Assembly (NCBI GenBank): GCA_964036045.1
Contig: OZ038378.1
Location: 168,640,001 to 168,704,000, forward strand
Length of the DNA: 64,000 nt
Direction of reading: 5' to 3'
From: Eutreptiella sp. 'Long Island Sound 2002'
Lineage: Eukaryota > Protista > Euglenida
The position numbers and the translations under genes are program-made. Below, in pieces: positions 35,201 to 53,200 of this stretch (position 1 is the first letter of the stretch; the number at the start of each line of letters is the position of its first letter). Below the pieces are notes generated by a model. It ran no database searches. It was not told where the DNA came from and saw nothing but the letters and a program-made list of their open reading frames with translations.

Positions 35201-38200
35201 AGTGTGTGCTCTGGGAGGGGGCGTACGCGTGTCGCTGGGGAGCGGGCGCCGCGACCAAGACCGGGGGCGCGCAGTGCCTCGACACGTGGCAGAAGTTGTA
35301 TGGCGCCCGCGCGCTCGTGGAGCGCCATTGGGCCCGGGGGCACTTCCAGCAGAGCCTCGTGTTCGCGCGCTCGGGCGCGTTCCGCCACCTCCGCATCGCC
35401 GGCCACGTGCTGGTCACGTCGCAGGTCCACGGCATTGGCGGCACCGCTCTGAACTCGAGGGTCGGTTGAGATTGCTTGGGGCTGGGAAGTCTGTAGTTCC
35501 AGGCAGCGACCCGGGCGTCTCTGTGGACGTGCTTGTACCGACCGTTGGTGTTTAGGGGCCCAAAACATTTAAATGCACGACTGTTTTTGTGCAGTTCCCT
35601 CAAATTCCCTTGGGTTCTTTTTGCAGCTTCATTATGGTACAGATCGGGGTTTTTGCTCACCAAGAATTGCCCGATGCCCACTGAGATTTTGAAGACATGC
35701 AACAGCGAGTTATCAGGCCCGTTTTTTGAGTTCCTGGATTCCTGTGCGAAGGCACGCTTGTCCGTTTTCCAGAGCACCTTGTGAGTGGGGTTTGCTGGGG
35801 ATGTCATCCGAACGCCCCCTCCGGCCCGAGACACCCCTGGAATGTACACGCGCCACGAAGGACGCAGCCGTTAACCAGTGATCAGAGCCGGCTTGCATTT
35901 GACCGTAGCGTCGCGTGTGCGTATGAACCTTGGGCGTCACACTGCCGCATGATGGGGCTCTTTTGCCTGTCAGAGCGACAAAGAGCGTTGCGGCTCCATC
36001 TGATTTGTTCAAGCCATTTGAGGAGCGCATCACGGGAGATGAGACCCTCGGAAACAGCTGTTTGTATGCCTGACAGTCGTTGTGGCAGATTGGCTGATCG
36101 CAGCAGTCTGGCGGAGAAGGGGCACACCGCCCACTGCACACCGCCCAATGCATACCACACATGTGGCGTGTGCAGTGGGCAGTGGGCAGTGGGCAGTGGG
36201 CAGTGGGCAGTGGGCAGTGGGCAGTGTGGTGCTGGTGGTACACTACCCACTGCACACTGCGCACCGCTCACTGCACACTGCACACGACCCCCCAGCCACC
36301 CAAAGGGTCACACTGGGTATCACCCACACAAATGCTTTACACGCGCGTTCAGACCGTTCTGGGGGGTTACAACATGAACAAGACATCGTTGGCACCCTCC
36401 CAGTGGCCCGGGACGTTTTTTTGACAGCGTCCGTCGGGGTGGCTTCACCCGTTGCACACTACGCGTTGCGCACTGCACACCGCACCGCCCACTGCACACT
36501 GCTTGCGACGGACTGCACACATACCGAGGGACATGCGAAACAGAAAGCCTCCGAAGAAGTGGGGCCACAGCGGCAGCCGGGCCAACAGCGGCTGTTTGTT
36601 GCACGTTGAAGACAACTTGATCCCAAACGCCCCGCATTGTTGCGGGCAGACCATCACTGCCTTCGCCTCCTCAGGGCCCGGACAACAGCCTGTGCCTCTT
36701 CAACCGCACGAGCGGCCGCTGCCTCACACTGCGCCGCAGGGCCCCAAATGCCGCGGTGGCGCAGCCCGTCAAGCCCAAGCCCCGCGCAGCCGTTGCACTG
36801 GCAACTGCCGCGCACGGCCCTGCCAGTCCCGCGGCGCCTTCCCCGCGCCCTGCGCCGTGGGCCGCAGGACGGGGCCGCACGCCCAGCCTTGACGTACCGT
36901 GCGAAAGGGGCGTACCGGTCTGCACGCTGACGTGCCTGGACGTGGACGAAGGAAGTGGGCTCCTGGCGACGGGCTGCAAGGACCGCACGGTGATGCTGTG
37001 GTCTTGCCTCACCGGTGAGCTGCTGCAGCGGTGGTATGCACAAGGCCTTCTTCCCCCCCTGCAATGGCCCGGGAGCTGCGGTGGGTGTGACGTCCTCTGG
37101 CAAGCCTCCCCAGTCTCAAGACCTGCAGACCTCTGGTGGCCTGGCCCCGGGCATCACGTCTGGGATTGTGCGCCACCGCCATTTGTGTCTCGGACGCTGT
37201 GGCACGGCCTGGGACCTGCAGTGGCTGCCACTGCTTGCGGGTGGAGCTCGGATACTCAACTTACTGCATTGTGCAGGGCCTTAGTGCCCCCCAGGTCAGG
37301 AGCATGAATTGACATGGTTGTGTGTGGGGGTGGGGGTGGGTGTGCGGGTGTGGGTGGGTGTTGGGTGGTTGCATCCAGCACAGGCTGTATATTTTTTGGG
37401 TTGTCATGAACGCGCACTCCTCCGTGGGGGTTTTCTTGGTCTGTTGGTTAGTGCGGAACCAAAACGTGGTGCAGGTGGGGGCACAGGAGGAAGTCTGTGC
37501 CACACTGAACCCACTGTCCAGGACTGCACTTTGTCGGTCTCTATCAACAGACGGAAAGACGTCTCGGGCTGCCCTGCGGCTCCCGAGGAGTTTTCTTTCA
37601 CCGCTTCTCTTGCTCTGTTCTTGTTTACGGTTCTCATTGTGTGTGTGTGTGTGTGTGTGTGTCTGAGTGTCTATTTTTTTTTTCGGGTCAGCCTTTCAAT
37701 TTTTCCCTTGTCAAAATGTCCAAGAACGACATGGTCCAGTTGGCTGATGGCACCCAGATCCCTCTGTGCCGCCCGAACAGCGTGAATGACAAAGATTGGG
37801 CTTCCGTGAAGGATTACCTTAAGACCCACCCCAATGAAGCTAAGGCTCTGCAGAAGTCCGTCCAGGGTGTCACTGAGAACCCTATGCAGCTGGACCAGTT
37901 CCGTGAGGTGATGGCCCTGGCTGAGACCTGCTGTTTTTCCACCCCCTGTACACACGCCCTCATACATTGCTGGTTGGTCGTAACCGGTGACTCCACAGGC
38001 CTCGTCGTCGCTGACCGTAGTGCAGGGGGACTGAGGTGAGGGCTCTGAAACATTCCCGCAACCCATGTCTGAGCTTAAGTGACCCCTGTTTCTGTCCTTC
38101 ACAGGCCCTTGGCTTAGCGCTCTGCGCGGCTGCTGAGGGCTGGAGACGGTCGTGATCGGGTGCAGGATGTGCCTCTTCCTCTCGCCCTGTACTGCAGAAA

Positions 38201-41200
38201 GGCGCCTATTGGCGTCGGACATGCTCTGTCTTGTTTGATGTCCAACTGACGAGGATTCTGACACTCGGATACTGAGTTGTTGCCCGTTTGTCTCGCAATA
38301 GTGTGTGTGTGTGTGTGTGTGTGTGTGTCAGAATGTGTGTAAGCCCGTGTCAAGCACATGTGCAGGTGTCGGGCTTCACTGTGTCTGGGTCGCCCAGAGT
38401 CAGCGGTGGCCTGTAATCCCCGAGTCCAGCGCAGGGGGACCTGAGACACCCTGAGAGGCCTGCCGTAGTACCTTCGGGGAGGGCTCTTCAGGGGTTGTCA
38501 AGACTCGTCGTGGACACACTCCCATCCCATCCCCTGCCATTAAGGGCAAACATGACCGCGGCTGATGCACACCGCTTGTTGACTGACGGTGGATGGCCAT
38601 TCTTTGAGTATGGCTGGCGGATGACTGAGGCCGACTGGCGATTAGCCCTGACTTTTCAAGTGGCGAAGGCATCATCCAGACGCACAACAGTAGGATACCG
38701 CTGGGTCCTGTTCCCCTTGTTCTCGCCTGTGCATGAGGGTTGTGGCCCAGGGGGGCGAGGAGGTGGGATGTGTCCGGCGTCTCACGCAACGCCGCACGGG
38801 GTGCACTGCCACAGAAGGCCACCAGTTGGGTATGCCGTCGCATCTGTTGTCACGACCAAGCACCAACGGCAGCAGCATGCCGCAGCATGCCGCAGCGCCA
38901 GATTCTGGGAGCCGTTGGTGGGGGTTTTGAAGCATGCCGCAGCATGCCGCAGCATGCCGCAGCGAGCCAAAATTTTCACATGGTGTACTTTTTTTTTCAT
39001 AACATGTCAAACCTGTGAACCCTTTGTTGCCCAAATGTCTCAGAACTGGATGGTAGCTCAGTGGTCTATGTGCCAGGTCTCAGCTTGGAGGGTCTTTTTT
39101 GCCTGTCAGTTCCTCTCTATTGTTGCACAGATCTTCGCTTTTTGCGCCAGGAGCGGCTGGAATACCTCAGACAGACCTGGAAATCCTCCATCTGGTCTGA
39201 GGAGGACGATGATTCCTACACGCTACCTGACCCTGAGATACCCCTAGTGTATTCTCTGCACTATGGGCAACAATGTTCCCCTAAGTGGGATGACGGCTCA
39301 GTACCTGCCAAAACGGCTGATCGGTAGAAAAAGAAAGAGCATGGTAAGAGCAACCTCCATGCCGAGGAGGATTTCCTGCAGAAAATCGAGAGTTTGAACC
39401 TTGACCCCCGACTGAAGAATCTGCTCCTAACCTATGACGAGGTGTTCGGCGCCCTGCCGCCTCCCCTGTCCTGCAAAAAACTGGTCCAGATGGACCTGAA
39501 ACTGAAACCTGAATTCGAGAAGACGCGAGTGAGACGTCGTCCCTATCCCGCTCCTCAGGAACAGGTTGAAGAAATCGAGCGCCAGATCCAGGAATGTATT
39601 GATGCTGGCCTCGTTGAAGAATATAAGAAGGGGGACTACCCCCATCACTGCAGTCCGTGCTTCCTGGTTGCTAAACCTGGATCGACTGCCCTACGACTGG
39701 TTGTTGACTATGGTGAGGTCAACAAGAAAACCCAAAACCACTCGGGGAGTATTCCCAACATGGAAAACACCCTGGAGCGTATTGCCAAATGCCGGTACAA
39801 AACCAAAATGGACAAACGCAGTGGTTTCTGGCAGGTGGACCTAACAGCCGCAGCTCAAGAACTGCTGGCCTTTATAACCCCTAAGGGTCGGGTGTTTAAA
39901 TGGAAGGTCATGCCTTTTGGGGTGGCTAATGCCCCGGCACTCTTCCAAGAACTGATGAACAAAATTTTGTCCATACTGAGGCGCAGACCTTTAGTACAGG
40001 AGTTGATTTCCCGAGGGGCAGAAATGGAGGCCCACATCGATGACGTGAGTTTGGGTACCAATACCCAAGAGGACCATGTCCTTCTCCTCCGTGAGTTTTT
40101 CATTGTTTGTCAGGAAAACCATCTCCGAATCAAACTCGAAAAATGCGAGTTCATGAAAGAAGAGATGGAGTATTTGGGTTTCGACGTGGGGTATGGCTGG
40201 TGGAAACCAGCCGCGTCTAAGATGCAGCCCCCACAGGACATGCAGATTCGCGATGACCCTAAGAAGGGTCTACACGACGTGAGGAGTTTTGTGGGCGCCT
40301 GTAACTTCTATAGGCGACACATCCACAATTTTACCTACTCTTCTGCCCCTCTCACTGACCTAATCAAGAAAACTACTCCCTGGAGGTGGACCGCCAGAGA
40401 GGAGGAGTGTTTCCAGGAGTTGAAGAAGAAAATTGCCTCCTCCAACTGCCTGGGAGTACCCCGCCCCAAGGGCGAGATAGTCCTGATCACTGATGCCAGT
40501 GATGTAGGGGGGGGTGGAACCATATACCAATGGCAAAAGCTTAACCCAGCTGAACTAACTCATTGCCATTATCGCACCACAAGGCTGAACCGTGATGGTT
40601 CCCTGAAGCACGACTATCCTTCCAGTGAGTGGCGACTTGTACCACTGGGACACTGGAACTGGAAATGGAACCAGGCGCGTTCCAATTACAGCACCTACGA
40701 CCACGAGCTCCTGGCTAGTATGCTGGTGCTCTCATCCCAGTCCCTACTATTGGGATCTAACCCTATTGTCTGGCTCTGTGACCAGGAACCAGTGAAGTCC
40801 TTTCAGAAGGGCCCACCAGCGGAAAAAGCGAAACTAAAACGGTGGTGGACTTACCTGAGCCAGTTCAGGCTGACAGTCCATCATATCCCTGGTATAAAAA
40901 ATGAACTGTCTGACTACATATCGCGCAACAATTTCGATGCGCTTATAGGTGAGAGCTCTGAGGCTCTTGCCAAAGAGGCTTTCCAGCGTATGGATGTCCA
41001 GCTTGACCTGTCTATGCGCACAGCTGGAATCCCCGAGGGTTGGAGCCTAACTGACTATCGGTCAGAATATAAAGAAATTATCCAGATCCTCAGCACTGGT
41101 CTCGAACCCCGTGTCATTGACGGGCACCAGTGGTATAAAAATAACCAGTACCTCTTCTACGAGGACCGTATAGTCGTGCCTGAGGCTCGACTCGATGGGT

Positions 41201-44200
41201 GTCTACAGTGGTCCCATCTCAGCTCAGGTCACAGTGGCGCTAATCGCTCAGTGCACTTCTTCCGAGAGTGTTTCTACTCTGGTCTAACCCTGATTGAACT
41301 CAGGTCCCGAATGCAGACCATTGTTGATGCTTGTGGCTATCATGCCAGCAAGCACAGCGATAGTAGGGATAGGGGACTCATTTCCAGCCTACCCATACCC
41401 TATTGTACTAACTCTCTTCTCTACGTGGATTTCATCCACCGCCTACCTCGCTTCGGCGGCTATGATAGTTGCCTAGTGGTCACCTGTGGCCTGTCCCGCT
41501 TCACCCGTGTGTTCCCTTGCAATAAGAAAATCACAGGTGAGCAGACTGTGAAAATGTTGGTCGAACAATGGTTTGAACCATACAGAGCACCTAAGCAGGT
41601 GCACTCTGATGAGGATGTACGCATCCGCAGTGACACAGGATGGTACAAACGAGTGCTAAATGCCCTCAACGTTGAGGTAACCACAGGTGTGCCCTATACC
41701 CACACGTCTAATCCTCGTTGCGAGAGACAAAACCGTGTGGTGGAACAGAACCTGAGAATCCTGATGAAACAGGAACGTACCAAAGACTCGGTACGCCTAG
41801 TGCCCTGGGCAGTGCTGACCATGAACTCTCAGAGGAGCTCTTCTACAGGTTTCACTCCCCACGAGCTATTTCATGGAGGACGACCTGCTTGGTTCTTCAA
41901 AACCCCCTTTCCCGAGGACTTCAAGAGCCCGGTTTGTGATTGGCTGGAACACAAGCAGTCCATGCCTAACCAGGCTGGGACTAACCTGAGACATATCCGT
42001 GAACGTGAAGTGAGCCGACGAAATCGCCTACGGCGACCCGCCAGTTTCAAGGTTGGTGACCTTATTTTGGTTCACCATTCACGCCTACCCTCCTGGCCCC
42101 GCAACTGCCTACAGGACCCTTATTTTGGGCCCTATCGTATCATCAGGATAGATGGATCTAGAATCCATGTCAGGTGCAGTCCACGTCTAGGTGGTGAACT
42201 GCTTTGTGCTCCTAAGCAGTTGAGGCACTATCACTCCCCTGATGATTTGTCCTGGGATTAGTGGCGCCTCAGCGACAGTGAGGTCGAGCGTATCGACCTA
42301 GAGAACGCTGCCAGCCCTGAGGAGGCAGACGAACTCGAAGAGATGACTGCCGATGAGATGGCAGTCGATGGTTACTACGTGGTTGCAGGTATTGCCCGCC
42401 ACGAATATAAACAGGGCTGCAAATTCCTAACCCTGTGGGATGGATATGGGCTATCTGAGGCGACCTGGGCACCTATGTCCGCCTTTATACATCCAGATGG
42501 GAGTATCAACCCCATCTTTCGCTCCTAGCTCATTGAGAACAACGAGGGACAGCTACTAACCCGTGCTGAGACTTTGTCCCAGCGGAAAAAGAAAAACTAA
42601 TCTCCTTGTGTCTATCTATTAACTGTTTTTTAACCTCCCAGGGGCGGTGAGCACTCCTGCGCTAAATAGCTAGGCCTACTGTGTGTGTGCCAGGATAGGT
42701 TCAGAACTCCTGTAGAGCTCCAGTTACGTTGAATGTACTAACTCCCACCCTCAATCGGGTTCGGCACTCCAAACACCTACACATCCGCTGCTTGCGGAGT
42801 ACTGCACCTGCCCTGGCTGTGCCCTGCAGTCCCATGCCTATGGTTACTGGCGTGAGCCAGGTGGCCGCTTATCAGGTTTGCAGCCACCCAGCGAGTGTGT
42901 GCCTTGTTGACCATGTGTTGCATGGGAATTGCCCTGATGTAATGACCTTGGGGAGCCAACGAAGAGCGGTGGCTTTTTACTCCAGGCGGGAATGACAAGC
43001 AAGGTGCTGTGAAGCAAGGTGTGTCCACCCTCCTTGGGGACAAGCGTGCCCACAGTTGGGACCCCTGACTGGTCCAGACCCATGGGGTTCTACCCTTCCT
43101 TACAGGGGTACCATACCCCTAAGTGTGCTACGTATGTCTGTATGTGTCTCACTTCACTCCCCGGCGTGGCTCCCGGAGACCGGGCTTCGCTGACCTCGGA
43201 CCGAAGGTCCTAATCAGGTACTATTACCACTCCTATGGCGCCCAATTTCTGTGCTGGCGCCTATCCTTTGGGGGAAGACGGCAAAAGCCCTACCTACTAG
43301 AGGGGAGGGGTGGCCAAGTGTGCTAAGGGCATGCAAAACGCCCATTTTTCTAAAGGCCAAAAGCTAACACACTCCCCTGCCCACGAGGAAAAGCACGCGG
43401 GACACCACTACACTACACTCACTAATGCCAGCACCAGCCTTCGAAAGCAGGGTGAGCACAACCGCACTCAGCCCCTTAGGTTCGGAACCGGTTTTACCAA
43501 TTAATCGGAAAAAACGGTTATCGGCAATAATCGGAGGTTATTTTGAAAACAATCGGCACAACCGGTTATTTTGAAAACCGATTTAAACCAATTAATCGGA
43601 TTGGCTCCAAATTTTTCAGGTTCCTTTTTGGCGGTATATTTTGTCCAATTTTTGAACTAAACAGAAGCTTTGGTCGCAACAAACGATGGCCGATGGTGAA
43701 TGACAACTTGTCATGTAGTTTTGATCACTGTGCTCCGACCTGTATGGGGTCGCTTCTGCCGATGGCAAGATTATGGTTAGTAAAGGGCAAATAATCGGAA
43801 AAACCGGTTAATTTGAAAACTATTAATCGGCAAAACCGGTTATTTTTGTAAAAATAATCGTTTAAAACCGGTTATTTTCAAAGCTACCAGGTTCCAAACC
43901 TTAGGTGCCGACCCTAACCCCTACAAACGCTACTGGGTGGTCATGGCGAAGAAGTCACGAGCCCTACTCGCCCCCCTGTGAAAGTGCAAGCGAACACAGC
44001 GCTACTAAGCGACTGTGGCCTAATAGGGACGTCACCACACGTTTCCCTGTCAGGGCTTGGAGGGAAGGAGTGCTCTGTTTGCGTACACAACGTGTATGGC
44101 AATGAGGTCGGACTGTCCTCTCCACTCCAGGCTGAGGTACAGTTTGTTGATTGTGTGATCTGCGCCCTTTTTAGCTTGGGCAGAAAAATCCAAAGTCGCC

Positions 44201-50200: not shown

Positions 50201-53200
50201 GCTTGTCCCTCAAGAAACGCCCCGGGCCTCATAGTGATCCACAGCGTCCCTGATCCGCACCGAACCGCCGTAGCATCCGAGCAACGCGCACGCGAGGCCG
50301 TGTGACGGTAAAAGGCGACACTTGCTACTGTAATCAGCGTGTGTCTGAGGCGACCAAACCTGTACGTCTGCTTTGTCTGCCTTCGCAAAACGCGCTCTGT
50401 GGCATAGGCTTCACGTCTGCGATCTGCGGATGGACGCGGAGGTGGGGCACATCAACGTGTATCAAGGCGCAATGCTGACCCTCCGCATTGCAGACGCCAT
50501 GAAGATCTACACCGGAGGGGGTGATGATGACCCGCGACTGGTCTGTGCCGTGCCTACCCCGTTGCCAGAGCTTCCCCCCCTGATCTCCCTCCCTTTCTCT
50601 TGTCATGCCATCCTGCTGAGCAATGCCGCTTTGACGTTCGACCAGAATTTGTTTGCGCGGTGTGCTCACGGTGCGATGCGCAGTGCGCGTGCAGTACTGT
50701 GGAGGTGGCGCTTGGCATGCAAACACTCGAACCAATGAGGACAACCCACGGCTGCTGTTGCCGGCCCAGTTGCTGGACCCATCTTGGGGAGGTCGGTGCA
50801 ACATGCTTTCCTTTTGGGGCTCTCTCTGACTCTCTGCCTTGCCTTGGTTCGCCACACAACACATGGAAGAAAAGCAGACGCAGTGTAGTGCTCAGGGTGC
50901 GCTGGCATCCTCATGGGAAACAAAATTCATGGTGTGTGCTCTTTACAAGGATTTGGAACTCATACAGAAGGGCATCTGGGGTGCGAGGCAGTCTGGCGTG
51001 AGAAAGCGCGCTGCAGCGTAGAGGATGGGCATTGTAATGTGAGGAATGACTATTGGGGCGTTTTAATGGGAGGGAGAAACGTTTTGGCGTGAGATAACGG
51101 CATTGGGGTTTTCAGGAAGGGCCTCGCAGTGTGAGTGTAGGGCACTGGGGTGTGAGGGAAGGATATTAGCGTGTGAAGGAGGAGCATTGGGGGGTGAGGG
51201 AGGAGCGTTGGAGGCTAAGAGAGGAGCATCAGGGTGTAAGGTAGGAGCATTGGGGTGGGAGGGAGCATTGGGTGTGAATGAGGAGCATTGGAGTCAGGGT
51301 GTGAGGGAGTAGCTTTGGGGTGTGAGGGAAGAGCATCAATGTGAGGGAACAGCATTAAGGAGTGGGGGAGGAGCATTGGGATTCAGTTGGGGACGAGCGT
51401 TGGGGTGTGGTGAAGGATCACTGGGGTATGATGGGGGAGCATTGGGGTGTGGAGGGGGGGGCATTGGGGTGTGGAAGGGGGGGCATTGGGGTGTAAGGGG
51501 GAGGCATTGGGGTGTGAGGGGGGGGAATTGGGGTGTGAGGGGGAGCATTGGGGTGTGAGGGGGGGGGGGCATTAGGGTTTGAGGGGGGGGGCATTGGGAT
51601 TTGATTTGATTTGATTTGAGGGCCGATCTTGAGGCTCACAGGCAGCCTGGGGGCGCTCGATGGCTGTCCCGACGACTCTGCATATCGGTGGGCCATGCAT
51701 GCAGTGCACTCCCCGTCCGTGTCCGCGGGCCGGGGGGGGGGGGGGGACGCCTATTGCCGCGCCTTGGGATGCTTGAGGAGGGGAGGGGGGAGGGCGGTGC
51801 GCGCACTTGGCCGGGGGGGGGGGGGGGCTCCCGGGTAGGGGGGCAAGGGGGGGGAGGGAGGGGCGTCGGGGCTCCGGCGGAAGCTCACCCGGGGGCCTTG
51901 GGTCAGGGCACGTGAAAGACGACTTGCACCCTGCAACGTTGTCGCCATGCCCGCATGAGCTCGCGGGCGGCGAACCACGCACGCGCGGTGGCGTCCTCTC
52001 CCGCCCGGGGGTACTGGTGCTGCGGGGGCAGCGGGGGCACCCCCGGGGCAGGCAATACCACATACCACTCGGCATATACCGTGGGGATCGAGGCCTGCAC
52101 CGCGCCGGCTACCGCATACTGGTTGGGGGGCATGGCGAGGGACCGGTTGCCCCGGGAGAGGCACACGAAGGTGCCGTCGTGGGCCCCCGGACCCCTCCGC
52201 CACATCGTCCCGGCCCTCGACCACGAGCCGGGCGCTGCAGGGCGCTGGTCCAAGCTTGCGGGGTGGGGGCCCCGCCGCGGCGGATGGGGGACCCAGGTCC
52301 CAGAGGGGGGCCAGCAGAGGGGCCACCTTGTCAGGCCGCGTGCCCTCGCTCCGATGGAGGCGGGGGGACCGCCAAAGCGGGGCTCCCGCGCCGTACCTCC
52401 AGCCGAGGGCCTCATGGAGCGCGGGCCCGGACACTGCTAGGCGCTGGGGGACCCGCTGTAGCGCCGACAGCACCCACCGGCGGTCCGCCCCCGTAGCCGT
52501 CCAGTGGAGGAAGCACCCCATGAGGATGTCCTCCAAGCAGAGGTGGCTGGGGAGCAGCCCCCCGAGGATGTGCAGCGCATAGACAACGCTCGCTAGGGAC
52601 TGCTCGGAGCGTAGGAGGCGGGTGGGCAGCGCTTGGCTCACATGGCTGAGCCACAGGCGGAGGGTGGGCGCCGGATTGCACCGCGTCATCCAGCGGCGCG
52701 TCTGCTGTTCCCACGCGTGCAGGCGGCTGTGGGGTAGCGGGCCACGCCGGCCCCGCCTGAATGGGGACGGTGGCGGGAGGGCGCGGTAGGGGGGATATTG
52801 CACTTCACGCCGTGGCATTGAAGGAGCTGTACCTATGGTGCGGGGGGGCATTGGGGTGTGAGGGGAAGGGGCATTGGGGTATGACAAGGGAGCATTGGGG
52901 TGTGATGGGGGGGCATTGGGGTGTGAGGGGGAGCACTGGGGTGTGAGGGGGGAGCATTGGGGTGTGGGGGGGAGCATTTTGGTGTGATGGGGGAGCATTG
53001 GGGTGTGAGGGGGAGCACTGGGGTGTGAGGGGGGAGTATTGGGTTGTGAGGGGGGAGCATTGGGGTGTGACAGGGGGGTATTGGGGTGTGAGGAGGGAGC
53101 ATTGGCGTGTGAGGGGCGGAGCATTGGGGTCGGTTGGTCAGTCTGCCGGTCACTTATGCCACCCCCCCCCCCCCCTCACACCACAATGCTCCTCCACATC

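Follow-up and report, generated by a model that had tools for sequence, protein, structure and literature searches.

Within a 64,000-nt stretch of the genome of the euglenid Eutreptiella sp. 'Long Island Sound 2002' (assembly GCA_964036045.1, contig OZ038378.1, positions 168,640,001 to 168,704,000 of the forward strand; hereafter the window, whose own numbering is used below), the 5' part of a mature trans-spliced messenger RNA (mRNA) is present as DNA and is fused to the tail end of a retroelement. On the plus strand, a relic of the spliced leader (SL) is followed by the 5' untranslated region (UTR) and the first 71 codons of an AKR2-like ankyrin-repeat gene, which run directly into the 3' end of an element that we call X, so that the overall order is (GT)n, SL-UTR-codons 1-71, X 3' end, (TG)n. 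The SL/UTR junction in DNA arose when a mature trans-spliced mRNA was reverse-transcribed. The whole arrangement is quite probably the outcome of one insertion, during which the X reverse transcriptase (RT) would have jumped from X RNA onto a host mRNA.

The sequence at 37663-37685 is the spliced leader of the host species, on which genomic SL-RNA copies and the 5' end of a transcript agree. It consists of CTGAGTGTCTA followed by ten T and CG, and covers 21 of the 26 SL nucleotides (nucleotides 6-26). Apart from the absence of the first five (ACTTT) and a T run of 10 instead of 8, it matches both the SL-RNA genes and the RNA-form leader found at the 5' end of a transcript contig (L080), which has 8 T. 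The 19-nt core of the leader has a single match in the window, where none is expected (100 shuffles). Genome-wide (2.28 Gb), the exact 8-T SL is present in 3,600 copies and the 10-T form in 56 dispersed copies. An SL-RNA intron (G, 5-9 nt, CGCTCCT) follows 906 of the 3,600 exact 8-T leaders, and these intron-bearing leaders are grouped in arrays on contigs C1, C2, C3, C7 and C9; at the one SL-RNA locus that was inspected (L017), a 5S rRNA gene lies about 500 nt away on the same strand, the classical Euglena SL-RNA/5S arrangement. The other leaders, about 2,700 in number, have no SL-RNA intron and are joined to other sequence.

What was copied can be traced to a parent gene on the same contig, 1.01 Mb upstream (locus L001; G000 C1:167,664,048), in which codons 1-70, searched against the genome in six frames, gave a second 100% protein match over 70 aa. 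L001 is an intact open gene of 257 codons. A 277-aa product that opens with 20 residues of translated leader and UTR also came up in a protein search; the source of this product, L080, is a 1,245-nt transcript contig from a JGI sample in which the 8-T SL is joined to GGTCAGCC. Transcript and genomic parent are identical over 1,213 nt, with no intron, up to the probable poly(A) site, and since the parent is intronless the loss of introns is uninformative as to retrocopy status. The junction itself is informative: upstream of its UTR, L001 has a polypyrimidine run and reads ttgttcAG/GGTCAGCC, while the window has the SL joined to GGTCAGCC at the very nucleotide where L001 has this AG acceptor. 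Because the SL stands at the same nucleotide in the DNA of the window and in L080, and the parent has an AG acceptor there, the window must hold a reverse-transcribed piece of the mature trans-spliced mRNA.

Over the 243 nt from the start of the UTR to 37928, copy and parent match except at 5 positions. Of these, two (37700 and 37709) are in the copy of the pyrimidine-rich 30-nt UTR (37686-37715) and three (37793, 37805 and 37883) in the copy of codons 1-71 (37716-37928), all at third codon positions; the ATG is at 37716 and no gene-derived codon follows codon 71. The 5' end is thus kept, apart from 5 nt, while the 3' end and the poly(A) are missing because the copy stops at codon 71. The parent protein carries C-terminal ankyrin repeats (Ank_2, Pfam E 2.5e-27). 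A green-algal homolog (P0042, 31% identity) combines ankyrin repeats with PF17830, an STI1-type domain, and no STI1/DP-type domain ahead of the repeats was called by Pfam in the parent protein. The label 'AKR2-like' is a reasonable one for the parent gene.

The fusion of mRNA and X is direct, with no filler. Both partners have the trinucleotide ACC in common at the putative switch point (37926-37928), as seen when the joint (...GAGACC/TGCTG) is compared with the parent (...GAGACC/ATGAAG) and with the closest copy of X, L047 (...CATTACC/TGCTG). Across the joint runs a chimeric open frame of 107 codons plus stop (37716-38039), made of the 71 gene codons and 36 codons read through the X 3' UTR. 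No Pfam domain was found on this frame, and in the listed RNA runs only about 0.2 of the words were present, probably microsatellite words. The predicted chimeric retrocopy is a single-copy, dead and non-functional fragment.

These results bear out much of an earlier note on this DNA, which had read the SL/UTR junction as reverse-transcribed mature mRNA and the leader as that of the species, had expected a parental locus with an AG acceptor at the UTR start in place of the SL, and had described a copy abutted upstream by (GT)n, with its 5' end kept and its 3' end and poly(A) lacking, that opens into a 107-codon chimeric frame whose stop ends at 38039. Its suggestion that the peptide resembles the N-terminus of AKR2-like ankyrin/STI1 proteins was right as regards the ankyrin repeats and the AKR2-like relatives, P0042 being one; the STI1 part is not called by Pfam in the parent.

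The flanks tell how the fragment was probably inserted. Upstream lies Y (37320-37637), a (TG)n-tailed, high-copy repeat of about 290 nt. First-look candidates for it number more than 1,500, with 80-91% identity among scored copies, which begin at about query positions 20-60, end at the microsatellite and, elsewhere in the genome, are likewise (GT)n-flanked. The (TG)n microsatellite between Y and the leader (37638-37662, within the TRF row 37638-37670, period 2) is presumed to be both the tail of Y and the target of the insertion. Downstream of codon 71, the sequence at 37929-38300 is the last ~374 nt, or 3' UTR, of X, and corresponds to positions 1396-1779 of a 1.78-kb reference copy. It is followed by (GT)14 at 38301-38328, which by TRF and the alignment of X copies is the 3' tail of X and marks where the insertion ends downstream. 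Beyond this tail comes single-copy DNA (~38329-38885, at least about 560 nt).

X is itself abundant (1,608 first-look candidates; scored copies 84-98% identical), and its habits were read from 19 other copies aligned to the 1.78-kb reference. These start at positions 1, 1, 18, 123, 663, 773, 879, 1041, 1114, 1236, 1271, 1271, 1323, 1335, 1351, 1351, 1352, 1375 and 1385, whereas all 19 end at 1776-1780 and continue with (TG)n; (GT)n directly precedes 13 of the 16 copies that are 5'-truncated. Such varying 5' truncation, together with a microsatellite tail, points to target-primed reverse transcription into microsatellites and not to an element with long terminal repeats (LTRs). On the pattern of its copies, X is a (TG)n-tailed non-LTR element that targets microsatellites and is readily truncated at the 5' end. 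The X part of the window begins at reference position 1396, with the (GT)n 266 nt further upstream, before the SL. The tract is therefore displaced by exactly the length of the extra complementary DNA (cDNA), which is why mRNA part and X part are read as one insertion; with (GT)n before the SL and (TG)n after X, the pair sits in the same target context as ordinary X copies. Since the (TG)n upstream of the SL is the tail of Y, it is into this tail that the insertion went.

X also has a direct connection with leaders. Within the X part of the window there is an internal trans-splice acceptor, ctgcAG/AAAGGCGCC (38190-38207, with the AG at 38197-38198), and the SL is joined exactly at this acceptor in 84 dispersed genomic copies; at L041 (1497-1640), for instance, (GT)n is followed by the SL, AAAGGTGCC... 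and (TG)n. RNAs with the X 3' end have therefore been trans-spliced and then reverse-transcribed up to the leader. In other words, copying of SL-capped RNAs by the X machinery extends as far as the leader. These leader-capped copies of the last ~105 nt of X plus (TG)n are dispersed and SINE-like, and are made by trans-splicing. At another place (L074:800-1830), at least five short (TG)n-tailed elements stand head to tail in one microsatellite tract; one of them opens with a 9-T leader and two show a cAG/AAAGG module.

A plausible course of events can be outlined. By target-primed reverse transcription, a (TG)n-tailed element of the X family would have entered the (GT)n tract at the end of an older Y, its enzyme first copying the last 374 nt of the X RNA. 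At the 3-nt ACC microhomology the enzyme would have switched template and landed, at codon 71, on a mature trans-spliced mRNA, namely the transcript of an abundant ankyrin-repeat (AKR2-like) gene. Copying would then have run towards the capped 5' end and ceased with the last 5 nt of the SL uncopied, after which joining of the cDNA to the microsatellite would have produced the order seen today.

The same structure could in principle have been built in two steps, with a longer or full SL-capped retrocopy arriving at the (GT)n first and sequence after codon 71 being removed later, by insertion of a 5'-truncated X or by deletion. Elements do stack densely in such microsatellite tracts (L074), and other old copies of the same gene family are scrambled and internally duplicated. 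Yet X copies normally have (GT)n before them, as counted above, and no such tract is found at codon 71; in addition, no match to the rest of the mRNA lies downstream of the X tail, and the ACC microhomology suits a template jump, all of which makes a two-step origin unlikely. The setting that the earlier note had proposed, capture of the mRNA by template switching in an LTR-retrotransposon particle and integration with LTR sequence, fares worse, although its template-switching half agrees with what we regard as the likeliest origin. What had been taken for LTR-like sequence downstream of the copy is the 3' end of the (TG)n-tailed, 5'-truncated X, with no flanking LTRs. The nearest LTR-type element is a Ty3/gypsy-type pol open reading frame (ORF; RT, RNase H and integrase) at 39394-42261, which could lend the idea some colour, but the single-copy DNA at ~38329-38885 parts X from the high-copy region to which this ORF belongs. 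Moreover, there are no direct repeats of at least 60 nt in 36-44 kb and no LTR-like pair of at least 80 nt in 34-54 kb (only a G-rich minisatellite at 51-53 kb was recovered), and the varying truncation points and microsatellite tail of X do not belong to an LTR element. An origin in an LTR particle is accordingly very improbable.

Since every mature parental mRNA bears an identical SL/UTR junction, cDNA contamination or a chimeric assembly could imitate the copy. However, the latter has private variants and a 10-T leader, and sits between genomic repeats. A 421-nt short-read contig of run X1 covers 37675-38058 without a difference and spans the mRNA/X joint at 37928 at a depth of 3.9, which is that of the single-copy flank (the (GT)n/SL junction, being repetitive, was passed over); over 37763-37825, contigs of runs X2 and X3 agree fully with the window, including its letters at 37793 and 37805, all three runs being ones that may belong to the project of the assembly itself. 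An artefact thus strikes us as barely credible. In a further run (X5, organism B), contigs lie on 36400-37626 and 38433-38884 and none on 37684-38004, a gap over the retrocopy that could be a presence/absence polymorphism or a mere coverage hole. Finally, although the SL exon sequence is in place, a variant SL-RNA gene or pseudogene has next to no probability. True SL-RNA genes continue with GTATATACTCGCTCC..., and the one checked (L017) stands beside its 5S rRNA gene, whereas the leader of the window is followed by no SL-RNA intron or Sm-site sequence and runs instead into the parental UTR and coding sequence. An Rfam scan of 36-40 kb and of the X copies returned no SL-RNA family, no hammerhead and nothing at the SL copy, and alignment to parent L001 and transcript L080 ruled this reading out.

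Against a single template jump from X RNA onto the L001 transcript, several points have to be set. The arrival of mRNA part and X part in one event would rest on structure only, and a target-site duplication is unreadable inside the (GT)n at this insertion. None of the 19 other X copies inspected is a second chimera of cellular RNA and X. All three coding differences between copy and parent are synonymous, and the window variants at 37805 (C) and 37883 (T) recur in a 2,135-nt contig of run X3, which departs from the window at 37928. The copy may therefore derive from a second allele or a paralog outside the assembly, and may then be younger than its 2% divergence implies. As for the read support, run X1 possibly comes from the assembly's own project.

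What class of enzyme would have done the copying is suggested by the longer copies of X. They contain a frame with the RT-like motifs ADCKEQFN, IPMGGPFSAQ and, in place of YxDD, QFRDN; the RT-like region is C-terminal in the frame and has thousands of genomic relatives, many of them open frames of ~1,250 aa. QFRDN is invariant in an alignment of the X family (A2; P0072, P0066, P0074, P0077 and others), and the family is very abundant with young copies, despite having QFRDN for YxDD. The nearest named protein-atlas clusters carry RVT_1, HTH_animal and GIY-YIG. A profile search of 1.84 billion representatives gave 756 hits, almost all of them fragments and two with sequence N-terminal of the RT, and in one relative (P0145) a sub-threshold GIY-YIG match (E 0.033) covers residues 23-102, upstream of the RT region. 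N-terminal-endonuclease Penelope-like elements are known for frequent 5' truncation, partial tandems and insertion at microsatellites (Craig et al., 2021; PMC8557442), in a paper that makes no mention of euglenids. Taken together, these features incline us, with some reserve, to see X as a Penelope-like element with a predicted endonuclease ahead of a very divergent RT. The label is not proven, as it draws on sub-threshold and indirect evidence, and part of the record speaks against it: Pfam assigns no family, RT or other, to the X ORF or to four relatives of greater length at E up to 1 to 5, a profile search of PDB sequences came back blank, and an AlphaFold2 model of the relative P0072 (8-sequence alignment) had a mean pLDDT of 44, too poor for a fold search. 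A match to a DUF (E 0.18) that came up in the Pfam scan of the X ORF and its relatives was set aside as being at chance level. Related frames also occur in tandem: at L081:240-7870 (ENA contig ctg9674), an array of 1.86-kb units that are 99% identical has in each unit an RT-like frame of ~445 aa related to X, and four of its ORFs match no Pfam family at E up to 0.1.

The window copy is one example of a genome-wide copying of leader-tagged RNAs. The first 30 genomic leader sites divide into 8 SL-RNA genes and 22 sites where the leader is joined to other sequence, and several of the 22 belong to repeat families whose long frames go unrecognised by Pfam; one family codes for a C-type-lectin protein. 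There are other traces of the same ankyrin-repeat mRNA family, in the form of old leader-capped paralog pseudogenes, one of which has two leaders: two SL precede an old paralog pseudogene at L007:1370-1500. At L026:1400-1600, on the minus strand, three SL stand in tandem (one full, one with G for A and one 5'-shortened). A 125-nt piece of the same ankyrin-repeat mRNA, with no leader, is found in L009, L010 and L012-L015 (~1493-1631 in each) and at four more places; it consists of the last 8 nt of the UTR and the first 117 nt of the coding sequence (90-97% identical), forms part of a repeat of at least 10 copies, and looks like an older capture that was later amplified. The lectin frame (434 aa, no introns, C-type lectin domain at E 6.5e-8) is headed by a leader and stands at no fewer than two places (L025:183-1484, minus strand, and L035), which makes it a candidate for a host-type gene retroposed with its SL.

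A few other features of the window deserve mention. The pol ORF at 39394-42261 (plus strand) is a frame of 955 aa of Ty3/gypsy type, with RT and RNase H and an integrase-core match below the Pfam cut-off, and no LTR pair was found around it between 34 and 54 kb. The G-rich minisatellite extends over 51100-53137, in two blocks of 21-nt units, and it is to this that the strong GC skew at 50-54 kb is due. At 36105-36320 there is a long hairpin or inverted repeat, where many sub-threshold matches to miRNA families on both strands are probably spurious. As regards the position inside an intron that the earlier note had given the copy, a sub-threshold WD40 match at ~36924-37040 is the only nearby hint of coding sequence.

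An SL in DNA is an unambiguous mark of reverse transcription of mature mRNA, and for one host gene the proof is full: the parent has the AG, and at that nucleotide the leader stands both in the transcript and in the DNA copy. This extends to euglenids a phenomenon known from dinoflagellates, and points to a (TG)n-tailed, microsatellite-targeting retroelement as the likely agent; no published description of retroposed SL in euglenids was found by full-text search or in both Euglena genome papers. It is conceivable, if still doubtful, that in Euglena the microsatellite-targeting Penelope-like RTs routinely reach the capped end of SL-bearing RNAs and jump onto host mRNAs. In that event, fragments of host genes and retrogenes would make up a sizeable class among the ~2,700 leaders that lack the SL-RNA intron. 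Euglenids would then have a record of retroposition that can be dated, as in dinoflagellates, and a route by which exon-sized pieces are scattered and fused into new frames. The finding also suggests that template jumps onto abundant mRNAs have helped to build up the very large, repeat-rich genome of this organism. At a practical level, genomic SL copies will confuse gene models, trans-splice-site mapping and any count of SL-RNA genes in the species.

Three known systems invite comparison. In the relic-SL retrogenes of dinoflagellates (DinoSL; PMC6050394, PMC5585692, PMC12014239), as here, a leader that belongs to RNA only heads a gene copy in the genome, and the stacked leaders at L026 and L007 are a dinoflagellate-style record of repeated retroposition. 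The euglenid case differs in its host and in that the window copy is a non-functional 5' fragment, without poly(A), fused to the tail of a retroelement. X can be likened to the Naiad/Chlamys Penelope-like elements (PMC8557442) in its 5' truncation, partial tandems, association with microsatellites and C-terminal RT. It departs from them in an RT that escapes Pfam, in QFRDN where YxDD is expected and in a GIY-YIG match that stays below threshold, and its membership of the group is not established. A third parallel lies in the chimeras made by template switching of LINEs (U6/L1 and mRNA/L1 in mammals, MGL in Magnaporthe; PMC2104539, PMC4476161, bioRxiv 10.1101/2025.02.02.635956), in which the 3' end and tail of the element likewise follow a 5' part derived from a cellular RNA and copied to the 5' end of that RNA, in the same orientation, by direct fusion and at the usual target of the element. 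In the window, by contrast, the driver is (TG)n-tailed and probably Penelope-like, not a LINE of the L1 type with a poly(A) tail, and the captured RNA bears an SL, which proves that it was a mature mRNA.

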